Source: Glycera tridactyla (taxonomy: Eukaryota). Taken from it: 64,000 bases of DNA. The notes below the pieces were generated by a model that was given only the letters and a program-made list of their open reading frames with translations, did not search any database and had not been told where the DNA came from. Location: positions 74,710,001 to 74,774,000 of the forward strand of contig OZ286463.1 in assembly GCA_965644265.1 (NCBI GenBank). The letters run 5' to 3'. Made by a program: the position numbers and the translations under genes. Shown here one piece after another: positions 36,991 through 54,200 of this stretch. How positions within the stretch are numbered: position 1 is the stretch's first letter; every line of letters starts with the position of its first letter.

Positions 36991-37118
36991 TCAGTATGGT
37001 TTACTGTCACTCTTGGGTCGCTTTAGCTGAACCTTAAGCCGCTTCATACCTATCTGGAAGCCATTCATAGCTTGGATGGCTGCGCCCGCACTTACTGGGT
37101 TATCGTAACTCACAAACC
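36991..37118 (-). CDS. CELF1/2: CELF1/2-type RNA-binding protein, last coding exon (second half of RRM3 and stop)
   Basis: ttgcag|GG TTT GTG... translates (G)[41 protein letters not shown], the CELF C-terminus; TGA at 36991-36993; the exon continues to a donor after 36975. Confidence 0.97.
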
Positions 37119-37745: not shown

Positions 37746-37889
37746 CGAAGCATTTGCTGAGATTGGTTTGCTTGTCGATGAAAACTTTCGCAGACACTAC
37801 ATTACCAAAGGGCATAAACATTTGCATGAGATCATGGTCACCAAACTCTTGGGGAAGATGATAAATAAAAAGATTGGCACCGTCCGGAC
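37746..37889 (-). CDS. CELF1/2: CELF1/2 exon encoding the first half of RRM3 (144 nt, phase 1-1)
   Basis: tttcag|GT CCG GAC...TGC TTC G|gtgag; (G)[62 protein letters not shown] and (next exon) VSYDNP are CELF1/2-type rather than CELF3-6-type (CNL, SSKVFVDRATNQ, VSFDNP). Confidence 0.97.
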
Positions 37890-38357
37890 CTGAAAAGACA
37901 CAACACAAAACATACTCATATACACGGTTGTGTGACATGCAGCATCATTCTTTCATGTTATTCACAAATTCTATAGAAGCAGGTTTCTGAAAGCTGTGAC
38001 TTTCTCAACTAACTGTGCTCATCCTTAACTTCATCATTTTAAGATACAACTTATGTCCTTTAGATAAGAGTGGAGCCTGTGATTGGACACTCTGGTGAGA
38101 GATTGGTCCCAATAGGAAACCACTTTACCTGGTTGCTTTTCAACTTACATAAAGTCAGACATATCTCTGATGAGAGACAACTTCTTAAGACTTCTGATTT
38201 CGAGACAGCAATATTCAGAGCAGTCACTCTTCACAGATTTAACTGCTCTCTGAATGATCTTACATGATAAACGTTCAGAGATGCAATGTTTCGACTAGTA
38301 AGAAGAATGATGTCGAGATGAGGTTAACGACCATGGAGTTGACATCTTGGGATACGA

Positions 38358-38558
38358 GTTACTCAAGTACTGATGGTGATTTGTTGGAAGTTGAGAAGTT
38401 TTCAGGGTGAATCCATCCGTGACGTGATCAGCCCCTAACTACGAGGTCACGTGACGACGCTTCTACAGTGCATTTGCCATGAGCTGAAGAAAGGGACCGG
38501 ATGGATTCACCTGAAAGCTTCTCAACTTTCAACAAATCACCTTGAGTACTTGAGTAAC
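38358..38558. repeat. ~60-bp inverted repeat with 78-nt spacer, formed by two hammerhead-bearing elements
   Basis: 38358-38419 and 38498-38558 are reverse complements with about 5 differences. Confidence 0.9.
38480..38524 (+). ncRNA. Minimal type-I hammerhead ribozyme-like motif (degenerate stem II)
   Basis: TGAG-CTGAAGA-(a)agg..cct-GAAA-GC-TT-CTCA; stem I 4 bp. Confidence 0.5.
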
Positions 38559-38596
38559 AATTATGCCAAGAATGATGTAATTTTAGTACAAGTTAC

Positions 38597-38692
38597 CTTC
38601 TGTCTGTTTGCCTGCGGGTGAGTTAGCCGCGGCCTGCTGGATCTGTGCAGCCGTCTGTGCTGTCTGCGTTGTGAACGCATTCGGAAAAGATG
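38597..38692 (-). CDS. CELF1/2: CELF1/2 linker exon preceding RRM3 (96 nt, phase 1-1)
   Basis: ccttttcag|CA TCT...ACA GAA G|gtaac; (A)SFPNAFTTQTAQTAAQIQQAAANSPAGKQTE(G) joins in frame to GPDG, like vertebrate ...AAGSQKEGPEG. Confidence 0.9.
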
Positions 38693-40041
38693 CTGAAAAG
38701 GTGGAGAAAGCCATTGTAATATTCTGCATTCATCGAGAAAACTATTACAATCATCAAATAATGACATCATTCCAAAAATTCCTCATTTTCAGATTCAGAT
38801 TCAAAACAACTTTGAATTTGAGAATGAAGAATTTATGGGGACAATACAATATCTCAAACATTGTGAAGATCACTGAATTAATCTTCTATCATCATATTTC
38901 ATTATGGATCCAATACTGAAGTAAAAGTCTTTTCTGATCTTTGAAAAGAACACATATCTGGATCAGTTTACATGAATGTTTGAACTGGATTTTGGCAAGA
39001 ATGCAAATCTTACAGTGCTTCTGGCACTGATTAAGTACACTTACATGCTCACAAATTGTCCAGGGGTACATTTCAAAATTTTCTGAGGACAGACTATGTA
39101 CATACACTGATTGAAACGGTACTAATGTGAGAAAAACAAATTTCTGTTTTCTCTCTGGTTGCAGTATTATTTCCTCAACTCAAACTTCCTGAGAAAAGGG
39201 AATGCAACATAGTCCAACAACTTGAATAATTCGCTGATTGAATGCATAAATATTATCACTTCCATCTGTCCTTTGATTGCCTCAACTAACGGTGGTCCTA
39301 ATTACTTGAATATCTAGTCGCTCCTGGTCCAGAAGCATTCAGAATTTTTCATAGTGTTATGTGATTGTTCATATCATGAGAGACTTTCACATGAGGCTTT
39401 CACATAACTGAACAAATGACTGGACAATTAGACATATATGGGAAATTTAATTTGGTACGTAGCATACACATGAAAAGAAGCACAATAGCCGGAATGTAGA
39501 TGAAAATGTAAATGTAAAATATAAATGTACATTGGTTTCAAATCATCCCCAATGAAGAGAGCTTTGGATAACTGAAAATACACATGTTATATCCAGGTTG
39601 ATATGGCTGTACTGGGTCATAAGGGATACATATCCATGCTTTTTTGCCTAAATATGCATAAATATGATTTCAGCATTACTCATACTGAATATCAGCGTGA
39701 TCAGTTCTTGGGATCTCCAATTGAGCGAGAATTCTCAGATTCATCAGCTACGGCCAAACCCTTTGTATTGTCATCTACATTCCAACAACTGCGCATTTGT
39801 GATCACCCAAACACATGAAACTATTGTGAGAGTTTATATGACTCGCAAACAGTCAATAAATACAAATCAACATTGTCTGAGTAGAGAAGTTCCAGTGAGA
39901 GACACTAGGGGGCACTTCATCAATGTTCCTGACATGAGCCATCTGGTGTTTCCAACTGGAACCATCTCAACAGGCAGGTGCTTCAACAAAACGTGGAACC
40001 ACCTCAGCAACACACATCACTCAGTGCATCATATTCCAGTC

Positions 40042-40112
40042 TGATTGATTGATTGATTGATTGATTGATTCATTCATTAGGTTTAATGAGATCTGGATGC
40101 TCTGTCCCCTGC
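40042..40112 (-). mobile_element. (TGAT)n tail plus short family A remnant
   Basis: TGAT run followed by GGTTTAATG and CTCTGTCCCCTGCA. Confidence 0.5.
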
Positions 40113-41956
40113 ACACGGTCCATTTAGAGTGCACCAAAAACGCAAATATAATTTATCCTTTGTAGCATACATTCCTGGAGATCTGAATGTTGAAACACAA
40201 GTTCTGAAGGAACCAGATGGAATTTCAATTTGAAAATCACAGAAATGACAGAATAGAGATGAAGATATTGTCCAAGGTGGAGAGATTGGATTATGTATGC
40301 AGGAGTGATAAAAAAAATTGGATGATGATCCACACCAACATAAATCTGTAAGACATAAAACATGGATTAGCCTTCACCAGCAGCGGCAGCAGCAGCAACC
40401 CAACCACATCACAGTAGCCCCCGGCAACGGTAGCATTCCACTCACGCCCAGACTCAGGCCACCAGACAAAACAAGACATCGCCAGCGTTTAGAATCTTCA
40501 ATCGGAAGATGAACGGATACTCTTGCAAAGTGGGTATCTTGAATCTGCACATTATAGCCTTGTATCTAGTTGAGAAAGTGTACATATGCCAAAGAGTGCG
40601 ACTTATCTTATTAGATAATGTGTGTGCCGTTATTCAGGTATTCATATTTGGTTACATTCTGAGCTATTTATAGGAGTGCTCCATGTGAGATCATCTGGGT
40701 TTATTTTATGAACTGTTATTTCAAGATTATGCACAATTTCATAGGTCTTAGGCTACTCCCAGTCCCTTGTCTATTTGGGATATTGTTTATGTGTTAATAT
40801 AGATGCTATATTGTTTGTTGAAAGAATGTTCTCGTCATCTTTGAAAAAGAACAGCCGATTCTCATGAGTAAAGGGATGAAAGAAACTCAAGTCTCTCTGA
40901 TGGAGGACATCAGGGATCAGATTTCAGTTTAATTTCCATTGGGATCTAAATATCCAGAAATGTGGAATGTTGAAGATGAAATCTCTGAAATATTTATAAT
41001 CATCTGAAAACATATAATGCTAATAAGATATATTTTTGATGGAGAATGAAGAGGAATTTCAAATCTAATCGAACATACTCCTTTATCAGAGGCCTGGCTG
41101 ATATATGTATACAGAGTATCTGGAATTTTTTACAATGCCATTGCTGTGCCAAACAGAAATCGAAATATGTTAGATCACAAAAACTAGAATCTCATTAGAG
41201 ATGATTTTACTAGCTTGACTAACTTGGCAATTCCGTATCAATCACAAAAGTTTGAATCAATCCAAATATAATGAGAGAGGCTGCGGAGTATGTCAGAAGC
41301 CAGCAGATTAGTGATGAGAGGGATAGTATGGTTCAAAGATTCAATCCAGGAAGAGGAGTATCAGCACTCTTCATAACTAAACATGCCAGTTCATCGTTTG
41401 CTGAACACTGGCACAGCATATGCACACACTGAGCTTTCTGTCTCCATGGGGATTATCAATGGTGAAGCAATGGGTTTGCAGGAAATGCAGTGCAACCACT
41501 GTAGCATCAAGGACAGTCAAGTGCTTGCAAGATCTATGAAGATAGTTCTATCATCAGGCAGAGTGTATTCACATGTTAATGCTTCTGATGTCAAATGTTT
41601 ATGCAACAGCAAATTGTGTTCTTTCTAATTCTGACAGGCAGGGTTTCATCAAATTTGATTATAGCTATATTGTGAAATGTAGGTATATTGGTATGCTAAA
41701 CTTCACTGGCATCAGGCTACTGATGGTAATTTTATTCACACTTCTGCAAGATGCAGATGAGCCACTTTTTGTACCAGCAATCATTTATTCATTGTTCAAA
41801 TAGAGATAGATGTCCAGTCATCTGGTACCTATCATTCTATGCTACATGGCCACATATTATGATTATTCAAAATCGGATGTTTTTTTTTTAGCAAAGACTT
41901 AGATTTCTCCAATGCTTTCAACCTAGGAATTCAATCCATTTTTTCCTAGAAGAAAA

Positions 41957-42092
41957 GGATCCCATTTTGTAAACAGAAAAAATTGGCAAATTATGAAAGT
42001 CAAGGAATTCATTACCAGATATTTGGATCCCATTTTGTAAACAGAAAAAATTGGCAAATTATGAAAGTCAAGGAATTCATTACCAGATATTT
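41957..42092. repeat. Perfect 68-bp direct tandem duplication
   Basis: GGATCCCATTTTG...ACCAGATATTT occurs twice (41957, 42025) with no mismatch. Confidence 0.95.
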
Positions 42093-43192
42093 CTTATGGA
42101 TCGTCAAATATAATTGCGGAAAGATACATCCAATCAAGAGTCCCATGATGAAACAACTTTTTCAATCTTTGAGCTCAAATTATTGGATGCACTGCTTCAA
42201 CTCTGTTTATCATATTTCGATTCGATTTCTGAGACCTTATCAAGACTTCAAAAAAGCTGAATAAGCACTGAAATTATGAATGCAAGCGAGCCAATATAGT
42301 GTCAAGGTATTGGGAAGCACCCACACAGATTATAATGCATTTGTACCTCTCCAAAGAACTGATAAGATTTGATTACCAACATTTGTGATGTTAGTTAAAG
42401 GCACCCAAGATGTAGCATTGCAGTTTCTGAGAATCAATTGGGGCAAATTGGGAATTTGTTCTGCATGCGCCCAAAAGCTGGTATATAGTGTTAGTATCAC
42501 ATTTTGAGTAGTGTTTAACCCTTAACCTGCCAAGAATTGCAAATGCCAACAGTATGGCTTGTCTGAAGGTGACATAAGTCCCGCTTATCACAACTTCATA
42601 GATTCCATAATCAAACATGTATATCTTTTCAGGGTCAAATTTAACATGTGAATTTCGTTGAGATTTCTTGCAAACATCGCAGGGTAAGAGTTAATGGTGC
42701 TGTTGGTTTAGGATGATTATTGTGGGTTGTAACACAGCATTATCAGAATGGAAGTTGTGAAATCTGCAACATTTCAAAAACATTAATACACACATTGGGT
42801 GAAACAATAAATCACACAACAGTATGCAAAATAATCTGCTTAATATGCTTAATTTCAATCTATTAAGTGGTGAAGATTTGCCAGGGATTCATGGCTTAAA
42901 AGATTACTTCTCAGTTTTATAAAAGTCACACAAGCTTCAAGAATGAAATATTTAATGTTCTTGTGCAAGATAAAGCCTAAGTGTTGTGGATTAATTGTCA
43001 AAAGAAATCACCCTTTGTGAAAGTGTTGGGAAGTCAGTGATTAGACATATACAAGTGAGGTAAAAAAAAAAGGATGAGGTAGGGCACCAGTGGAGTGTGA
43101 GCACAAAGCGGAGGGTTACACCATCACGTCACGCAACGTCACGCAACACATAACGTCAACGGGTCTGAAAAAGATGGAGAAAAGATCTTTAC

Positions 43193-43402
43193 CTTGACCG
43201 AGTAAACCGGACAAACCTGCGTATTGCTGGATACCCGTGTAGGCCTGCGAAAGCGTATCGCCACTGCTGGCGGACATTGGGGCACTGCCCAGACCGTTGT
43301 GGCTGTTCAATGATGCAGCCATGTTCGCCGCACTTGGTAGGCTGTTCTGGAAACTTGACAGACCCCCAGGGTTTTGAATACCATTATTCGTGTTTGAAGA
43401 CC
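43193..43402 (-). CDS. CELF1/2: CELF1/2 linker exon (210 nt; 186 nt if the donor after 43217 is used)
   Basis: ttttttttcttttcag|GG TCT TCA...; (G)SSNTNNGIQNPGGLSSFQNSLPSAANMAASLNSHNGLGSAPMSASSGDTLSQAYTGIQQYAGLSGLLGQ; LSQAYTGIQQYA matches the conserved CELF LTQAYSGIQQYA motif; donor G|gtaaag. Confidence 0.92.
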
Positions 43403-44990
43403 CTGAAAAGAAAAAAAACCATCATTAACATCACGAAAAGCTACATCCTTAATGCCTGGTATTGTCATAGCTGTAATGCCACACAAAACAGCATTGAATG
43501 GATCCCTCTAAATCTGCAATTGTACTTTGAAAGTGATTACATGTCTTTAGAGAACAGTTCAAGATGTGGATTCCTCATATGGATACTTAGGATGATTCAG
43601 GCATTGCAAATACAAGTGAAGTAATTGAGCAGTTACCATCAAAAGCAGGATGGTTTGATGGTCACTCAGGGTTTGAGCACATGTATCAAATTAAAGGAAC
43701 ATGTGTTCCATGTGTTCCAGATCTAATAGCTGAATGCATTGTTGTGAGCATGGATCACTCTCACACACCCTGAACACGAGCTGATGGGAGCCAGAATAGT
43801 AAAAGTGAAAGTATCTGGCAGTTGATTGATCACATGGTTAGAGTTTAATTGCATGTATCGAGCAAAAGCCAGCTGGCAGTTCACACACACCTCTGCCTAT
43901 ATTTCATGATACAAGTGAGATAACATAGCAGAATAAGGAGATGTGCTACAAGAAAGCTGACAATCATGTTGACTGTGGCAATCTGGCAAAGGTAATCACT
44001 CAGCCCCGGAGTGGATAAAGACATCTATATACCATCATGTAGGTTATGTGAATTAGAGAACAATATTGAGAGAAATTGAACATCTTCCATGTGTTTCAGA
44101 TCTTGAATCTTAGATCTGAAGATTATTGTGTGTATAATGAAATAGATAGGATTCTTCTATTCTTAGATGAACGAAAGAGCTGCGATTCTCAAAAAATCAG
44201 GTATATGTGTGTTTTCAGAAGAGTATCATGATATCCAAAGATATCATCATGCAAAGAACTAGAAAAAATCCTGCATTGTGTAGAGACTCAAATGCTAAAG
44301 GGGGCGAGTGAAAAATTGTAGTCTTCATTACAATGTTACTGGTAAATTCCATCACTATTGCAGCTGGATCATTCCCTACATGTGTGAGAAGACCAATACT
44401 GACATGAGAAACCTTCATGAATAATTTCCCTTGCTATATAATCCACGCACACTTCTAGGATAACTTCAGGCACACAAGTGAAGACAATGGTCCTCGAATA
44501 CAAAAACAACTTAAAAGAAATATATATTAGCATTGTGGAAGAGGGGTCTAAAGGTATCTAGCTCATACTGAAAAGACATAAGGAACAATGCTTCCAGTAG
44601 TGAAATCTAATTTCATCAATCAACTTATATGAACCACTATTGTGTGAGTAAAACTTGAATTGTCAACATATTTGAGAGACTAGTACTTTTCCTCAGATTC
44701 ACCTGCAATAACATATCTGATGATATCCGTGATACTGTTCCCCATTAGAAGAAACGAGACAGCTCCAAAAGTTCACCCAGATGTGACTGGGGGAATAAAA
44801 TGATACTGGCTGGTGATATTGGTTGTATGTTGCTTGTGATAATACATCTGGTCGGGTTTCAAAATGTTAAACAGTGATGTCCGTGCCATTGGCATGGGAG
44901 AGAACTACTTGAGACATTTCCTACCAGGTTACTTACAGAAGCAGTGATCATTGGAGATCACAGAAACTCAATCTGTTATCACAAACAAGA

Positions 44991-45055
44991 TGACTGGCTG
45001 GCTGGCTGGCTGGCTGACTGACTGACTGGCTGGCTGACTGACTAGCTGACTGACT
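44991..45055. repeat. (CTGG/CTGA)n microsatellite running into a gap
   Basis: Tetranucleotide units up to the N run. Confidence 0.9.
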
Positions 45056-45332
45056 NNNNNNNNNNNNNNNNNNNNNNNNNNNNNNNNNNNNNNNNNNNNN
45101 NNNNNNNNNNNNNNNNNNNNNNNNNNNNNNNNNNNNNNNNNNNNNNNNNNNNNNNNNNNNNNNNNNNNNNNNNNNNNNNNNNNNNNNNNNNNNNNNNNNN
45201 NNNNNNNNNNNNNNNNNNNNNNNNNNNNNNNNNNNNNNNNNNNNNNNNNNNNNNNNNNNNNNNNNNNNNNNNNNNNNNNNNNNNNNNNNNNNNNNNNNNN
45301 NNNNNNNNNNNNNNNNNNNNNNNNNNNNNNNN
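45056..45332. other. Assembly gap (N run)
   Basis: Run of N. Confidence 1.
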
Positions 45333-45596
45333 ATATGAATTGCTCATCACAGACTGGATTTACCGCACTTATATTCCAGCTGGTCTATTCTAATGGTCTG
45401 AAATGGATGTTAACCATCAATAGTTTGACAGTTCCTCTAAAGACTAAAGATCAAGCAAGGGCTACATTCCATGCCACAGTCTGGCACTCAACAGGGACCG
45501 GGGTAGACACTCTCTCCTGCCAAGTTACAAAGGAGATACTTGAAATGCCCTGTGATTCCTGCTCAACTTTGGGATCCCATGACGATGCAGGATTGC

Positions 45597-45656
45597 AGTT
45601 GCCATGAGCTGATGAAGGAATCCAGATGAATCTCTGAAAGCTACTCATTTTCAACT
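45597..45656 (+). ncRNA. Minimal type-I hammerhead ribozyme motif (best-preserved copy)
   Basis: Stem I ATGAG(45604-08)/CTCAT(45644-48), extended by AGTTG/CAACT; core CTGATGA 45609-15; imperfect stem II 45616-35; GAAA 45636-39; palindromic AGCT; predicted cleavage after UA at 45643. Confidence 0.65.
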
Positions 45657-45951
45657 ACAACTCTGAGTATCATGGGCTTCCTACATCTACGAGAAAGCAG
45701 AGGCTGATATATTGGGAGTGTAAGAGGTGAAAGAGAAGCAGTTAACAATAGAATGCAATGGCTAATGTCTGGCAAAGACTGAAAGTGGCTGATTCCCATG
45801 TCATCTATGGCCCCTGGATGCCCCTGGATCTCTATATGGGGTTCATAATAGTGATAGTCAGAATAGCAGCTGACCTCTACCTGTTGGAAGCTCTGCAATT
45901 AGTTTGGTTGGAATTTAACAGCACCTGCAAATCCATAGTTATGTGTGCCAT

Positions 45952-46026
45952 CCTCTCTCTGTCTCTGTCTCTGTCTCCCCCCCCCCCTTCCCTCCCTCCA
46001 GGTCTCTCTCACTCACTCTCTCTCAC
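45952..46026. repeat. (CT)n / poly-C low-complexity tract
   Basis: Pyrimidine-rich simple repeat. Confidence 0.85.
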
Positions 46027-46342
46027 GAGAAAAATTGCAGACCTTAACCCCACTAACACAAGATGATGCAGAGCCCGTAAAACTGGGCTAACAGTTGACA
46101 CTTTAGACCCATCCCAACCTGCATTTCATAGCACCGATGAACCTAATTATGCATTCAGGTGTTTCCTCATTGAATTTCTGTCCTTCAAGATGGCCCGAGA
46201 TGCTTCAAAAGAGCTGCTCATGCTGAACATTGGATTCTCTTATTATCTGGTGTGCTGATTTCATGATGGAGCTCACTTTAATTGATCCCAAACATTTCAT
46301 CTCTCACTTTACATTACTGAGTCACTGCTAATGGAGGAATTA

Positions 46343-46486
46343 CAGTCAAACCTGTCACAAGCAGGCACCATATTGGACAGCTGTCTGATGTACGAGGCCA
46401 CTTCATGCATGTCACGCCAGTATTCTCAGTTTCACCAGTCTTGAACAGCCACCATTTGTTATCATCGAAGATGCCTGTTTAGACTG
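46343..46486. mobile_element. Degenerate MITE (CAGTCAAACCTG terminus)
   Basis: TA|CAGTCAAACCTGTC at the left, weak inverted match ...TTTAGACTG at the right. Confidence 0.45.
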
Positions 46487-48435
46487 ATTAGCATAAGATA
46501 CTTCCTACACACCTCAACCCATAGACTGATAACAAGGGAGCTCGCAGGACAGTAGCTGCAGTAAGACTGAGATAAGCTTTCGATACTAAGACCAATCATA
46601 AATTTGGGGGTAAAGCCAAGCTGGAGAGCTGTGATACGCATCACTAGTGTTGTGACAGGAATGGGCTGTTGAATACACAAGCAGCACAGAAGAAAGGTAG
46701 AAATAAAAATCAGGGTTGGTGACAACAAAGACAGCAATGGCAGACAAGTAATATCACCCAAAGCGGGACACATTAAACTCCCTCAACATTAAATCTGGTG
46801 GTCGGAGATAATTTCTTCACGGCAGTAAGCAGGAACATGTTGATTCTGACACTCATAGACAAACTTCAATGATGACTTTGACCAATAATATTGTGCTTTC
46901 ATCGAGAAATTTCTATATTTCTCATGACCTATGTGAAATGCATTGATAGCAGACAAATTTCATGAAAAGTGTAGCAACTATTCAAAAAAATCGGAATAAT
47001 CTGATGGGAACACAGCAAATTTGGGTGGGAGTAAAATCGAAGAGAATTCTTTGCATGCATTATTACCAATGTTATCAACATACTTGGAAAAAAGGCAATC
47101 TCCAAAACAGTACAAACTGAGGAATCAGGTTTCAATGTCTGCCAGAAGGCTTGTAGAACCATGAACTGAATTGTATCTATCAAGATAAGAAAAGAAATGA
47201 CCACCTGGTTTAGATTTAACATTGGAAGCAGCAACTTCTGTCCAGAAAGCATTTTAGGGGTTCATTTCTTCTGAAGTTTAAAGTGTCCTCAATGTTGAAA
47301 CCGGTATTTTCAGTGGATATGGTTTTGGGAAAACCATAGGAAAACACCAGTGTCAGTACCAAGTGCACTTGGACAATTCCACAGCAAATGATAAGTTGAA
47401 AGGAAGGCGGGATTGGTGCAGACCATATCACCTTAGTTTGCTTTCACAAACCCAATGATAATATTTAAACATGTATGACACAGATTTCAGATGATATTCC
47501 TTGAAGGGGCATAAAAATCCATCATTCAGAACGGGTGATCAGCTGTATCCTTTACAAAAGCCCCATGAGTGTTGTTAATAGTATCAACTGCTTGATAATC
47601 AAAAAGGGGTGGGTTCAAGAAAGCACACATAGGCTGAAAAGCAAATTTGGTTTGGCAACAACTAAAGTTCAATCAACATCACACCAGAGAAATTATACCT
47701 GATGATGAGGTGGCATTGGAGCCTACAAAAACAGAACAAAATTCATGTGAAACTTTAAATCCAAAATGTACACCCAAAACTGATATTGAAAACTTAGTTG
47801 GGTACAAAACATTTCATATCTTCAAATATGGCATCTTCAAGTAATGCTCAACAGGTTTGACCTTTGACGATTGCAGAGAAAAGTTTGCTTTTTTTTCAAC
47901 AGCAAAAATGTGACTAGCGGTGTGATATTCAAAAGAATATCCACAAGTTATCAACTGTTCCTTTCACTTCATATGTGTGATATTTTTGTGATGTAATCCT
48001 GTGTTATCTGCAGTCAACAATTTGCCCTGTCCGTTCAAACCTCATTCCTGATAAGTGCTCATGGGGGTTTGTCCTTTGATGAACTGAGAATATCAATTAT
48101 TTTGCCACGCCCTTTGATAAGACATGTATAGAGCATGTGATAGTCAATGTGAAGGTTCCTGGTACTCAACAGAACTTGGAAATTAGGGTCAGAATAAGCT
48201 CAGGCCATGGTTTCAGATCCTAGGTGTTTCTATCTTATACTGTACACTGAAATCTGTGATGTGAGATCACCCTAAATATTACAGAATGGCAATCTATCAT
48301 AAGAAGGTGGTCTCTCACCAGAGGTACTAACCAGTCCTAAATTCCTCCCACCAGAGTATTCATCACTTTATCTGACAAGTACCTAGGATGAACTTGCTCA
48401 AAACATATGATTTCACCCTATCCCTTGCCTTCATG

Positions 48436-48630
48436 CAGTCAAACCTGTCCATAAAGACCACCTTCGGTTGCATCAAAAAGCGGTCTTTATAGGCAGGTGG
48501 TCTTTAAAGAGAGGTAATTTACTGTTGAAAATACTATCACAGTTGCAGCTCTGGGTGGTCTTTATAGACAGGTGGTCTTTATAGAGAGGTGGTCTTTATA
48601 GAAAGGTGGTATTTAGAGCACGTTCATCTG
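48436..48630. mobile_element. MITE, complete copy of the family at 1-135
   Basis: CAGTCAAACCTGTCCATAAAGACCACC left end; repeated GGTGGTCTTTATAGA; degenerate right end then TA. Confidence 0.8.
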
Positions 48631-48707
48631 TATTTGAACAAGAGTTGCCCTATGGAAGTCGGCCTACAAGTGGGATTCATGCAGCAGAAGCAAACCATGC
48701 ATTTGCC

Positions 48708-48746
48708 CTGAGCTGATGAAGACCACTCATTTTGAAAGCTTCTCAG
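48708..48746 (+). ncRNA. Minimal type-I hammerhead ribozyme-like motif
   Basis: CTGAG-CTGATGA-agaccactcatttt-GAAA-GC-TT-CTCAG; perfect 5-bp stem I, weak stem II. Confidence 0.55.
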
Positions 48747-49683
48747 TTTCCAAGTTCGCTGTGAGTACCATGCACTTTTTCTACTGAGAGATTTATGTAT
48801 GTCACGGTATGAGAGAATGCATCACATATCTCTTCAACCCTGGCCATATACTCTGAGGAGACTTGTCTATTCCATTTCCATAGTGCAACCATTAGTATGC
48901 TATGTGCAATAGAGCTCAAGGCTCTGCACACTGGTACCGTCTGATCAGCTCAATATGTTCACTGATAAATGACTTCCCTTCGATGGGAGCTATACCAAGT
49001 GAAGGAAGGTGTCCGAATTTCATACATCTACAGAATTGTCAATCTATTCATCTAACCATAAGACAGCATATTCGGAATCCTGCCGCAATATTGAGAATTT
49101 TACAATAGGATAACTATGTTGATGTATAGACAATTCAATAAAAACCATAACCAACATCATCTTGCTATAATTAGTGATCAAGCTGAATTATCTATAGATA
49201 CTTCTGAAAATCATACTGAAGAAACTCATTCCAACAACGGTCATTATTGGGATCTAACTTATTCAGCGATCTGTCGCCATAATCAATGCTGATTTTGATA
49301 ACAAAGTCACTAAAACATCCAACAAGAGCTCTTGCCCTCAGACAAAAACCAACAGTGGAAGAAACAACTTCAAACTTCCAATTGTATCCCGCATTTTAGC
49401 CAAAGACTGCATCTAGTCGCGATCTTAACTAGCACTCTTCGAGATACAACTTGGACCCCAACCAGGTCACAATATCCAATGAACATCACCATATTGAGTA
49501 ACAAGTAAGATCAAAATGTCCCAGAACAAATGAGGAAGTTCCAGTGATGGTTTTTGGACAGCTGCTGCTGAATCAGCTATACACCACTCTCACTGACAAC
49601 AACTAGCAACTGATGAAATACAGAAGAAAAGATTGATCGGAGGTGGTATACAAATGAGTTGATTTACTGACAGTGCCACCTAC

Positions 49684-49782
49684 CTGTAGTGTTCATGCCT
49701 AAAGAGCCCCCTGGTGTATTATTAGAAGCGGCTGCTAACTGGTTTAATGCAGCTAAATTCTGCATGCCAAGGGCACTGAGAC
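49684..49782 (-). CDS. CELF1/2: CELF1/2 linker exon (99 nt, phase 1-1)
   Basis: ttactgttacag|GT CTC AGT...ACT ACA G|gtaggt; (G)LSALGMQNLAALNQLAAASNNTPGGSLGMNTT resembles the vertebrate CELF1/2 [24 protein letters not shown] segment; joins the 43402 exon in frame. Confidence 0.88.
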
Positions 49783-50436
49783 CTGTAACAGTAATTGGAA
49801 ACAGAAGCCCTGTTAAAGAACAACCTCAATGAAAGAACGGACGGACGGATACACATGCATACACACATCACTGATGTATACAGTGCCGCAGAAACAATGG
49901 ACACAGACAGACTACAACGCTCTACACTGGAAATAATGACATGAACACTTGACTCCAGTCCACCTCATGACCAAGCATAAAATCAATTCACTATACAACA
50001 GTAAAGATGAGAAAGAAAAAAGATGGAGAGAAAAAACAGTTTCTGTATTGTGACCGAATGCTTGAGCTGAACAGTATAACCCATCGTTGGACATCCACTG
50101 CTCTACCTGCCAACACCGAAGCAACTCATAGCCTTGTTAATAAGATTGTGACCCTTCCACTGATCATCAGCACAAACAAGAGACACATCGTCCACTCATT
50201 CTGGCTTGTTGAAAGCAACCACCATGGCAGCATGGAACAAAAGACTTGCAGATAGGAAGTATACCCTCCTCAGACAAGACTACGCATCACTGAACTGAAC
50301 AAGGAAATCTAACTTCCTGGAAGGTGATGACAGTGTATTTCACAAACTATACATCAGCTATCCTCCTCACAGCCTTCAATGTCGAGGAGGAATGTGAAAT
50401 CATTTTCTCGATAGGGCAGATACTTTTCTCAAGAGA

Positions 50437-50494
50437 GCCGACCATGTGCCGACCATGTGCCAATCATGTGCTGACCATGTGCCAATCATGTGCC
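50437..50494. repeat. 11-bp minisatellite, ~5 units
   Basis: GACCATGTGCC / AATCATGTGCC units. Confidence 0.9.
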
Positions 50495-51009
50495 TCCAAG
50501 CAACCTTCTAACATCAAAACCATCCTTGGCAAGGGCTCCCAAGTGACTGCAAATATCAGTCCTCTCTTGCAATGTGAATTGAGAAGAAAACTTTCTGGAG
50601 AGATACCTCAATAAACCAGTCTCAATGAAGAGAGCAAGCAATGATTATTCATGTCATGGGTGTACTTGAATATCTGTGTATATCATCGTCGTGACAATTA
50701 TAAATGAAAGACTCTTAACTCAACTCAACCACCTCAGGACAAAATTGGAATAGCAATCAGCAGACCAACCCAAGTAAATAAAAGAACATCATCACTCAAG
50801 TTCCAATCATCAGGTTATCATATGCAGGGCTACCAGAAGGAGAAATATGCCCAGTCATTAAAAACATAGCCTTCACTGAAGGCGGACCTCATCTCAACAA
50901 AGCCAACTCGAATGCCTCGAATATATGTAACGCATAGATGACCCAACTCATGCTGTGGGAAATCAATTTTCAAACAAAGGTTGGATCTATCAGCTGATGC
51001 TCATCAGAA

Positions 51010-52460
51010 GTCACGTCTGGTTCACATTTACATTTTTGTCCCCCAAATCAAGCAAGGTTGTCATCGGTCGCCATCCATTGCAGGCATTTGTGAAGGAATG
51101 CTATGAAAGGCGTCTGTGTCAAGTTTAGTCTGTGGCTAGGGGCAGCGACAATCTTTAGGAAAAATCTATTTCTGAAAATCCACTTTTGTCCAAAAGTCAA
51201 TGAGCATTGTCAGGAACCCTGATCCCTGGCTGGCATTCATTAGGGAATGATATAAATTGCATCTGTACCAAGTTTGGAGTGGCTACGGACAGCCAACATC
51301 TTTAGGAAAGTCCATTTCTGAAAAAACAATTTTCACCTCAAAACCAACCAGGCCTGTTGGGAGACCCCATCTATGACTAGCATTCATTAGGGAATGATGT
51401 CAAGTACATCTGTACCAAGTTTGCTGTGGCTACGGACAGCCAACATCTTTAGAAAATCCATTTCTGACAAACCCATTTTCACCCCAAAAGCAACCAGTCC
51501 TGTTGGGAGACCCCATCTATGGCTAGCATTCATTAGGAAATGCTATTAAGTACATCTGTACCAAGTATGGTGTGGCTATGGACAGCCACTTTCTTTGGAG
51601 AAATCCATTTCTGAAAAGCCACTTTTCACCCCAAAACCAACCAGGCCTAATGGGAGACCCCATCTATGGCTTAAATTCATCAGGGAATGCTATTACATAC
51701 ATCTGTACCAAGTATGGCAAGGCTACGGACAGCCACCTTCTTTAGAAAAATCCGTTTCTGAAAAACCAATTTTCACCCCAAAACCCACCAGGCCTGATGA
51801 GAGACCCTATCTATGGCTGGCATTCATTAGGGAATGCTATCAAGTACATCTGTACCAAGTATGGTGTGGCTATGGCCAGCCACCTTCTTCAGAAAAATCC
51901 ATTTCTGAAAAACCAATTTTCCCCCCAAAATGAACCAGGCCTGTTAGGAGACCCCACCTATGGCTAGCATTCATTAGGGATTGCTATGAACTACATCCAT
52001 GCTAAGTTTGCTGAGGCTACAGACAGCCGGCATCTTTAGGAAAATACATTTCTGAAAAACCAATTTTCACCCCAAAACCAACCAGGCCTAATGGGAGACC
52101 CTATCTATGGCTAGCATTCATTAGGGAATGCTATTAAGTACATCTGTACCAAGTATGATGTGGCTATGAACAGCCACCTTCTTTAGAAAAATCCATTTCT
52201 GAAAAAACAATTTCCCCAAAAAAACCAACCAGGCCTGTTTGGAGACTCCATCTATGGCTGGCATTCATCAAGGAATGCTATGAACTGTATCCATGCCAAG
52301 TTTGGACTGTCTATGGACAGCCACCTTCTTCAGAAAAATCCATTTCTGACAAACCCATTTTCACCCCAAAACCAACCAGGCCTGTTGGGAGACCCCATCT
52401 ATGGCTAGCATTCATTAGAGAATGCTATGAACTGCATCTATGCCAAGTTTGGTGTGGCTG
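51010..52460. repeat. Tandem satellite array, 147-bp monomer, ~10 copies
   Basis: CATCTGTACCAAG-type anchor at 51111, 51260, 51407, 51553, 51700, 51847, 51994, 52141, 52288, 52435 (spacing 146-149, mostly 147). Confidence 0.97.
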
Positions 52461-52934
52461 GGTACTGAAAAACTCACCAGAAATGACCAAGTTCATTCAT
52501 TTCAAAAAAGTGATTTCATCATCTCGCGCATACCAGTCTTTCATGGGCAATATACAATCACAGGGGATAAAGACACGTGGAGAATCAACTGCAAACTGAA
52601 GATGAATAAATCGGATCATCAGAAATAGCTCATAGATGGCTAAGTCCCATCTCTTCAAAAAACCCAATTTTCATCCCAGTTTCATCCCAGAATTAATCAA
52701 GCAGAACACGGGGATGCTACCTTGATGCAATACCTCCCCTCAACTTCGTTGAGACGAGGTAAAAAACTGCTACCAGTGATCATTAGAAATGCACAACCAT
52801 TATACAGAGAGGTGAAACGAAACAATGAACCAGAATGGCATGGATTGAATGAGACTGAATCAACATGAAGATGGATGGATGTCAGCCTATTTGTCCATTT
52901 CTCAATGCACCAACTTTTACCCGCAGTAGCCATA

Positions 52935-52972
52935 CGCTGAGGACGAAATGTGGATGCATTTTGAAAGCTCCG
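52935..52972 (+). ncRNA. Degenerate minimal hammerhead-like motif
   Basis: CG-CTGAGGA-c-GAAATG/CATTTT stem II-GAAA-GC-TC-CG; stem I only 2 bp; shares the downstream CTGTGAGTACCATG with the 48708 copy. Confidence 0.4.
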
Positions 52973-54200
52973 AAAAGAAATTAACTACACTGTGAGTACC
53001 ATGAATTCCTACATTAACAACTTTTACCCTGCTCCTGAATACCACTAGGTGGAGCGGAAGCCAACATTCATTTTGTACAACTGATGGTGAAAATCTGTGA
53101 AGAATTTAGAAGATGGCTGCCGATGACAGCTGAAATGTCGACAACTGGCAAGTGATTACCCTGGTTGGGAGAAGAGATCTACGTTAATCATGAAGGTGAA
53201 AATGGCTGCCACCAACATGAACATGCAGCATTCACTCTGGAGACTTGTCGGGGACGATGTGGCCTAGGTGTGGATTCATCATTGTCTTGACAGATCCAGA
53301 TCAGGGGCATTCAATGAAATTCACATGTACAACTAATTTCTGTACGGGCATCTTTTCACAACATTCAGATTTTTCTGGCTGATGTTTCTCTTTATCTGCC
53401 CTATACCTCAACAGATGTTTCTTTGTATGATAATCTAATGATTATACATGAGACAGCTGACAGCATAAAGTGACCCACCATCTGTGCTTCAGATCTGTGA
53501 GGGCAATGTTTTACCACTTATAAAGGAAACAAAAATCATATTTTCAAATCTATACAGTTATCGAAGGACATGAGAGGATGTCAAGTAAATCTACAGAACT
53601 AATCATACTCAGCCTTCAATAATATTGATTCCATAATATTGAGATCTGTCACAGACATGACCAAATATACTCCCGCCACCCCTTCGACATAAAGACAACT
53701 ATGTCAATTGTGTTACTCTAACTTGAGGTAGCCACTCAACCAGAACCCTTCCAGGAGGACTTCTTGTTCACATTTGATGAAATCAAATCACCTGAGCTAA
53801 ACATCTGCCAACTTGACTCTTGACTACAAAAAAAGTTGAAGGGTTCATGAAGATTGTGTCTTGCACATCAACACTTCATGGTGATGGCATTCAATTCTAT
53901 AGCTTGAGAAATATGGAAGTATTTTGTTCTGCAAAACTTTTGCAGACAGAAAAACTGACAAACAGGCAGACCGTCAGCAGGATCAGTATATTCCGAACCC
54001 AGGGACCAGCATACGAAGACATTCAGCAATGAGTGGACATGGCTTGAACCCACACTTTCGATTCTAAGAATATGAGGAATTTTGTGTCTCATCACCTTCG
54101 AGTATGAACACTGAGGAGGTTCTATAAGTTAATAAAATATGAAGTATACCCCCAGAAATATCTTGAAAATTGTTGTGATGAATTTGCGAAGCTTACATGA

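Follow-up and report, generated by a model that had tools for sequence, protein, structure and literature searches.

The analysed stretch of Glycera tridactyla DNA (assembly GCA_965644265.1, contig OZ286463.1, positions 74,710,001 to 74,774,000; 64,000 bp in all, hereafter the window) carries exons of a CELF gene on the - strand and, on the + strand, four short copies of an element with a hammerhead ribozyme motif, the first of which is joined to a fifth, inverted fragment. These five fragments very probably represent four insertions of canonical endonuclease-containing (EN+) Penelope-like elements (PLEs), drawn from at least four subfamilies and 5'-truncated to the last 75–165 bp. This interpretation is carried by direct observation of family membership, of the anatomy of the copies, of a link to an open reading frame (ORF) encoding a reverse transcriptase (RT) and an endonuclease (EN), of abundance throughout the genome and of covariation in helices I and II.

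The window was scanned on both strands with the descriptor CTGANGA-N8-30-GAAAGCT, and dinucleotide-preserving shuffles served as the null. Exactly four matches were obtained, at 38484, 45609, 48713 and 52937, all on the + strand, whereas the shuffles gave a mean of 0.07 matches per window and never reached four. The four + strand motifs picked out in a preliminary description of this DNA were thus recovered, and alignment confirmed the shared flanks reported there, which read ..TTGCC(A/C)TGAG on the 5' side, followed by GAAAGCUH and, on the 3' side, (G/C)TGAGTA. All four + strand copies contain the conserved core boxes C3-U4-G5-A6-N7-G8-A9 and G12-A13-A14, together with A15.1/U16.1 and a non-G nucleotide at H17 (U, A, U and C in copies 1 to 4, respectively). 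An AGCU palindrome, which stands in place of helix III and in principle permits a dimeric helix III, is invariant across all copies. The copies lie 3–7 kb apart and are solitary, not tandem. A family covariance model, run unfiltered over both strands of the entire 64 kb, recovered the four copies at 85, 57, 47 and 30 bits (84.9 bits for copy 1) and the inverted fragment weakly, at 18.6 bits; no further credible match was found. The claim that all cores are intact holds for the two conserved boxes and fails for the structure, since half of helix II is missing from copy 3 and the pairing of copies 2 and 4 is weakened.

Copy 1 (38405..38571, +) is a 5'-truncated PLE 3' end that is 89–93% identical to 40 scored genomic copies. 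It contains a remnant of the C-terminus of the PLE ORF (38423..38482, +), consisting of 19 codons and a TGA stop, whose translation ends ..TTRSRDDASTVHLP before the stop and agrees with the C-terminus of the RT-EN frame found in long genomic copies. The TGA stop, at 38480–38482, is situated inside the 5' strand of helix I of a minimal hammerhead (38480..38524, +) that was delimited by its boxes, its fold and the covariance model. In this hammerhead, helix I is formed by UGAG and CUCA, the CUGAAGA box occupies 38484–38490, helix II and its loop extend over 38492–38512, and GAAA (38513–38516) runs into the palindrome AGCU (38516–38519), with U38520 as H17. Cleavage is predicted after H17, that is, after GAAAGCUU. 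The hammerhead sequence of copy 1 is identical to the consensus of its own subfamily.

The fifth fragment had been described as a sense-strand copy at 38358–38440 with a broken core. A fragment does exist on the - strand; its true span, however, is 38345..38419, and it is truncated, not mutated. This copy 5 is an inverted 5'-truncated PLE 3' end that matches the inverted segment 38498–38571 at 87–88% identity (88% over the annotated span). It begins inside loop II (CGGAUGG) and therefore never had a CUGANGA box, but it retains everything downstream of that point, namely the hammerhead's 3' half and the tail; the common 3' end of the family, ..CCCAAGA, maps to 38345. The letters at 38420–38440, which resemble a mutated core, belong to copy 1, whose upstream sequence they show as its reverse complement. 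Copies 5 and 1 meet head-to-head, with both 3' ends pointing outward (38345 and 38571) and with their junction within a microhomology patch at 38405–38420. The pair looks like one insertion event, comprising an inverted truncated copy and a main copy, and this first insertion would then have the classic PLE form, an inverted 5'-truncated copy placed head-to-head with the main copy. Relatives of copies 3 and 4 include further head-to-head pairs (on C34 and C10). As a separate observation, PLE ends of different subfamilies, both bearing hammerheads, were found about 300–350 bp apart in direct (L008:1533-1929) and inverted (L002:1528-1931) arrangement, which suggests that PLE insertions cluster in or beside older PLE ends.

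The remaining copies have the same general organization. Copy 2 (45564..45692, +) is an older PLE 3' end with 151 genomic candidates; its relatives share 76–82% identity, rising to 90% for short partial matches, and end at 45688–45694. Its hammerhead (45604–45648) has an intact 5-bp helix I (AUGAG/CUCAU) and a helix II paired at five of seven positions, and its ORF tail reads ..SHDDAGLQLP followed by the stop. Copy 3 (48682..48790, +), likewise an older PLE 3' end, yielded 123 candidates, mostly at 75–86% identity, and its 3' end is estimated to lie at or beyond 48785. Its boxes span 48713–48740, and the 5' strand of helix II has been lost through an 8-nt deletion between two ATGAAG repeats; its relatives are 8 nt longer across the matching span and carry ..GCAAUGA-AGACCAC-UCAUU... 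The fold of copy 3 lacks helix II, and the ORF tail ends in ..MHLP and the stop. Copy 4 (52919..53018, +) is a PLE 3' end of a younger subfamily, with 478 candidates at 86–93% identity and relatives that end at 53015–53020. Its hammerhead (52933–52975) combines a sound helix II of 7–8 bp with a helix I that contains an internal mismatch. Judged from the identity to their relatives, copies 2 and 3 are old (mostly about 76–86%) and copies 1 and 4 younger (about 90%).

The descriptor was also applied to the 2.04-Gb assembly, with the reversed descriptor as control. This search, suggested in the preliminary description, returned 7284 matches (3655 + 3629) against 297 + 331 for the control, an 11-fold excess. 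When positions 38437–38566 of copy 1 were used as a query, 717 candidates were found, of which 40 were scored and 30 were fetched and oriented. The 30 fetched relatives share a sharp 3' end, ..GTGAGTACTCGAGTAACTTCTATCCCAAGA, with no poly(A), and have scattered 5' ends; 28 of them are 129–385 bp long. The stretch 200–400 bp farther upstream gave only 39 candidates, compared with the 717 obtained with the copy-1 query. The common 3' end, the scattered 5' ends and the scarcity of upstream matches are the signature of 5'-truncated retrocopies.

In the long copies L061, L062 and L036, an RT frame is situated directly upstream in the same orientation (RVT_1 at 36.8 bits in L061, over a cut-off of 29.6). 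Downstream of the RT, again in the same orientation, lies a putative GIY-YIG-type domain, ..GVVYKIQCEKCPSNYIGETERS..AHMQH..AEAVHI..LNRDRG.., and the endonuclease motif VVY..C..C..YIGETERS..R..H..E..N is readable in the long copies. The nearest Atlas clusters of this second domain carry PF01541 and PF26215, with a score of 0.97. The RT has 1248 homologues, the few named ones being uncharacterised brittle star and feather star proteins, with many unnamed. At least 5412 RT candidates were found in the genome, many with stop-free frames of 830–857 aa at 62–71% or 42–47% identity, and intact autonomous PLEs are therefore present in this genome. The longer relatives of copy 1 thus run upstream into an ORF of RT and putative GIY-YIG type.

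These data bear on a second explanation of the short copies, which the preliminary description had raised in speaking of a possible non-autonomous family that it could not name. The copies might constitute a separate retrozyme-like or SINE-like (short interspersed element) family with a PLE-type hammerhead, relying for its mobilisation on PLE proteins that act in trans. They are indeed very short and numerous relative to the coding part (717 versus 39 candidates), no RT fragment was found within the window, and a 2026 preprint derives animal retrozymes from PLE pseudo-long terminal repeats (pseudo-LTRs) (10.64898/2026.07.22.740005). However, their 5' ends are spread continuously, with no common head; they are colinear with the RT-EN ORF and retain its last codons and stop; and tandem monomers are absent, all copies that the covariance model detects in the window being isolated. 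We therefore judge a separate family very improbable and regard the copies as colinear 3' fragments of autonomous elements encoding RT and putative GIY-YIG domains. A partial tandem (pseudo-LTR) was seen neither in the window nor in 63 fetched loci, none of which contained an element of full length. A 147-bp satellite in the window was considered as a retrozyme candidate and was rejected, since it has no hammerhead within it.

The anatomy of the 3' end was compared across subfamilies. The RT-EN frame of each long copy extends as far as ..TTRSRDDA..AHLP, where it ends in a stop located 4–5 nt before CUGANGA, in the 5' strand of helix I. Since the window copies keep this ORF tail, the upstream motif CA(T/G)T(T/A)GCC noted earlier corresponds to the last codons of the PLE protein (..HLP and the stop). 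Two variants occur in the copy-1 subfamily (L002-L057): in the TGA variant, CCA-UGA-G pairs with CUCA, and in the TAG variant, CCA-UAG-AG (..CCATAGAG) pairs with CUCU, so that in the aligned copies the switch of stop codon and a compensating change in helix I go together.

Pairing is maintained beyond this switch. In the alignment, 90.5% of the cells pair, as against 84% in shuffles, none of 500 shuffles reaching the observed value, and slid controls give 30–58%. Changes on both sides were detected in six of ten pairs, for instance pair 7-52 (AU in 11 copies, UA in 10) and pair 21-38 (GC in 30, AU in 5). The covariation of stem I that had been seen within the window was reproduced as well: copy 2 pairs ATGAG with CTCAT, whereas copy 3 pairs CTGAG with CTCAG, so that the fifth pair is A-U in the former and C-G in the latter. 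Helix II varies in sequence by subfamily yet stays paired (AGAGCUC/GGGCUCU, AGAAUCC/GGGUUCU and GAAAUGU/GCAUUUU), and loop II keeps GGAUG across subfamilies. These findings support the earlier assignment of the motifs to minimal type-I hammerheads of the Penelope-like kind, forming a real family with covariation.

The ribozyme is followed by a spacer of 22–25 nt, a conserved GUGAGUA, about 22 nt of further sequence and the sharp 3' end, with the same spacing in copies 1, 2 and 4. The GUGAGUA, which resembles a splice donor and is conserved across subfamilies, is located on the + strand at 38542–38548, 45663–45669, 48761–48767 and 52992–52998. Throughout the genome, an AUG in loop II accompanies 3800 of the 7284 motifs, against 52 in the control, and a downstream GUGAGUA was recorded in 163 cases, against none in the control, within a window of 25–55 nt that excludes the 22-nt spacing of the copy-1 subfamily. 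By analogy with the Poseidon PLE of Anolis carolinensis (PAc; PMC11167929), the loop II AUG could be taken as a PLE start codon, and GUGAGUA could supply the donor site for an intron that is retained. This proposal found no support, the frame stopping after 8–14 codons in the subfamilies that were read: in the most abundant one it is 8 codons long, and the phase at GUGAGUA differs between copies. No simple coding frame explains the conservation of either the loop II GGAUG or GUGAGUA.

Several results weigh against the assignment to EN+ PLEs. An Rfam scan of the window returned no hammerhead at gathering score or at E<=10, and RF00163, searched against the whole genome as the preliminary description had suggested, gave no match, control genomes being equally silent. 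The copy-1 subfamily has an irregular helix II of 5 bp with a bulge, and the fold stability of all four copies is no better than that of their own shuffles (z from +0.8 to -1.2). The GIY-YIG family PF01541 was matched at E 0.012–0.043, under the Pfam cut-off, and a PDB sequence-profile search for the endonuclease domain came back blank. The RT copies closest to the copy-1 lineage (83–89% identity) look degraded, and no full-length element of that lineage with a pseudo-LTR was seen. Furthermore, the link to RT and EN is direct for the copy-1 subfamily only and would extend to copies 2–4 through their shared layout and conserved ORF tail. The silence of Rfam is to be expected, because helix III of the minimal form is a single pair and the model expects a helix III, and it was not taken as evidence of absence, given this minimal form and the equally silent control genomes. 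Taken at face value, the lack of Rfam matches and the unexceptional folds would fit chance matches to a loose descriptor. That explanation is nevertheless already refuted by the number of matches in the window, the excess over the control in the genome, 100–160 bp of homology to hundreds of copies and the covariation, and we assign it virtually no probability.

The terminal layout of these truncated elements is fixed, with the last codons of the ORF and a stop in helix I leading into the minimal hammerhead, then the spacer, GUGAGUA and the 3' end; the hammerhead itself comprises CUGANGA, a long helix II with a loop containing GGAUG, GAAA and a 1-bp helix III within AGCU. From the literature on related elements, the ribozyme may serve the element's own cycle through the processing of multimeric or tandem PLE transcripts, and would probably cleave as a dimer or with the help of a PLE protein. 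The hammerheads would have no role for CELF, and the copies in the window would have been dead on arrival and have been decaying since. The hammerhead family of the window should be masked as PLE 3' ends, as should some 6,600 motifs of this sort across the 2-Gb genome. This amounts to ordinary repeat annotation of a kind known since 2014 (Cervera & De la Pena, PMC4209133); of possible interest for work on PLEs are the end of the ORF inside helix I and the conserved GGAUG and GUGAGUA.

CELF is encoded on the - strand, with the RRM3 exon near 37858–37881 and the last exon ending in ..DSKPY and a stop near 36994. A linker exon (38597..38692, -), with the acceptor ..ttttcag and the donor AAG/gtaac, places its 5' splice site at a distance of 26 nt from where copy 1 ends. 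The 64-kb window contains neither an RRM1 nor an RRM2 exon of CELF, and these exons must therefore sit beyond 64000, which would locate copies 2–4 in CELF introns. An assembly gap (45056..45332), bordered on its left by a (CTGG/CTGA)n microsatellite (44991–45055), lies outside every copy, its right edge being about 230 bp short of copy 2. Copy 1 and copies 2–4 are presumed to belong to one transcription unit across this gap. The statement that all four copies are oriented opposite to CELF transcription is thus correct for the orientation, and the location of copies 2–4 in introns should be read as presumed. In a transcript of either strand, the pair 38345–38571 could fold into a hairpin of about 62–75 bp, which would lie 26 nt from the 5' splice site of the CELF exon.

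All four copies with intact boxes are antisense to CELF, and the preliminary description attributed this to selection against hammerhead self-cleavage of the host pre-mRNA, calling the strand bias only suggestive and citing the broken sense copy as evidence. We consider such selection very improbable. Since copies 1 and 5 represent one event that holds both orientations, three independent oriented insertions remain, and three antisense insertions out of three correspond to a one-sided p of 0.125 and a two-sided p of 0.25; even four out of four would give a one-sided p of 0.06. The strand bias is therefore not supported, nor is the argument from the sense fragment, which arose by truncation and adjoins copy 1 in a head-to-head arrangement. 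Moreover, copy 3, which is dead, and copies 2 and 4, despite their weakened pairing, are still antisense. Depletion of retrozymes from introns has been described in Xenopus, without orientation data, and would favour selection (10.64898/2026.07.22.740005). The selective force is weakened, however, because single minimal hammerhead ribozymes (min-HHRs) are essentially inactive (PMC4209133) or dependent on a PLE protein (PMC11167929).

Depletion of sense copies could stem equally from the GUGAGUA present in every copy, which strongly resembles the consensus 5' splice site, or from the antisense bias that intronic retroelements show in general. The genome totals are strand-symmetric, as they must be, and are uninformative on genes. 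No report on the orientation of PLE hammerheads in introns was found in the literature. The common orientation in the window would be due to chance or, at most, to their general antisense bias. For the broader proposition that intact min-HHRs are depleted genome-wide in the sense orientation of introns, beyond age-matched broken copies, we see a slender chance; if it were true, weak ribozymes would cut host pre-mRNAs in vivo and shape where PLEs persist.

Contigs assembled from four small public RNA runs contained relatives of the repeat in many contexts and were uninformative on ends, strand and splicing. Contigs from three of these runs start or end exactly at 38488, which lies inside the CUGAAGA box and is not the predicted cleavage site; most likely, these ends reflect a break in the assembly graph at a repeat boundary.

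Other repeats are present in the window. The 147-bp satellite (51095–52459), with 9.3 copies at about 82% identity and no hammerhead boxes, ends 460 bp before copy 4. At 41957–42092, a 68-bp unit is perfectly duplicated in tandem (100% identical); this duplication is either very recent or an assembly artefact. A 17-bp repeat, GGTGGTCTTTATAGAAA, forms short arrays at 48467–48624 directly upstream of copy 3, with related arrays at 3–141 and 17279–17314, and holds a hairpin with weak microRNA-like Rfam scores. Beside the CELF linker exon lies an AT-rich imperfect palindrome of about 95 nt (38756–38854), probably a small inverted-repeat element; its matches to mir-580, one per strand, are weak (E 0.28 and 1.6) and score far under the gathering threshold.

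The closest known counterparts are the min-HHRs of metazoan genomes (PMC4209133), which number thousands per genome, mostly as single motifs from truncated PLEs, and also occur as opposite-strand pairs 100–700 bp apart. They are characterized by a helix I of 4–5 bp, a long helix II preceded by an unpaired nucleotide and a palindrome at positions 15.2–16.2; single motifs show no detectable cleavage in vitro and dimers cleave a little. The elements described here resemble them in the CUGANGA and GAAA boxes, the A-U helix III within an AGCU palindrome, the 4–5 bp helix I, the long covarying helix II preceded by an unpaired nucleotide, the thousands of mostly solitary copies, the opposite-strand pairs and the many subfamilies in one genome. 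They differ in the first pair of helix II, which here is mostly A-U, whereas G10.1-C11.1 is stressed in that paper. Neither an ORF stop in helix I nor a conserved downstream GUGAGUA was found stated there, and hosts of the echinoderm type are not named in its main text.

In the Anolis element PAc, the hammerhead cleaves only with the PLE protein, no RNA-seq reads end at its site, and internal initiation of reverse transcription gives the "tail" (PMC11167929). PAc and the present elements are alike in that the insertions have a defined 3' end shortly downstream of the ribozyme, the hammerhead lies at the junction of successive ORF units and overlaps coding sequence, and an AUG is situated in the region of helix II and loop II. 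In PAc, the ORF starts at helix II, whereas here the ORF was shown to end in helix I. Among the hallmarks of PLEs are 5' truncation, an adjacent inverted 5'-truncated copy and a hammerhead near the 3' end (PMC8557442; Craig et al. 2021). The present elements agree with that pattern in being heavily 5'-truncated around a shared 3' end and, at the head-to-head pairs, in having an inverted 5'-truncated neighbour; they differ in that no pseudo-LTR was seen in the window or the fetched loci. Finally, the copies share with the animal non-LTR retrozymes (10.64898/2026.07.22.740005) a type-I hammerhead of PLE ancestry and a short, non-coding form. Unlike those retrozymes, which consist of tandem hammerhead repeats and give rise to circular RNAs, they are solitary, variable in length and colinear with the end of the ORF.

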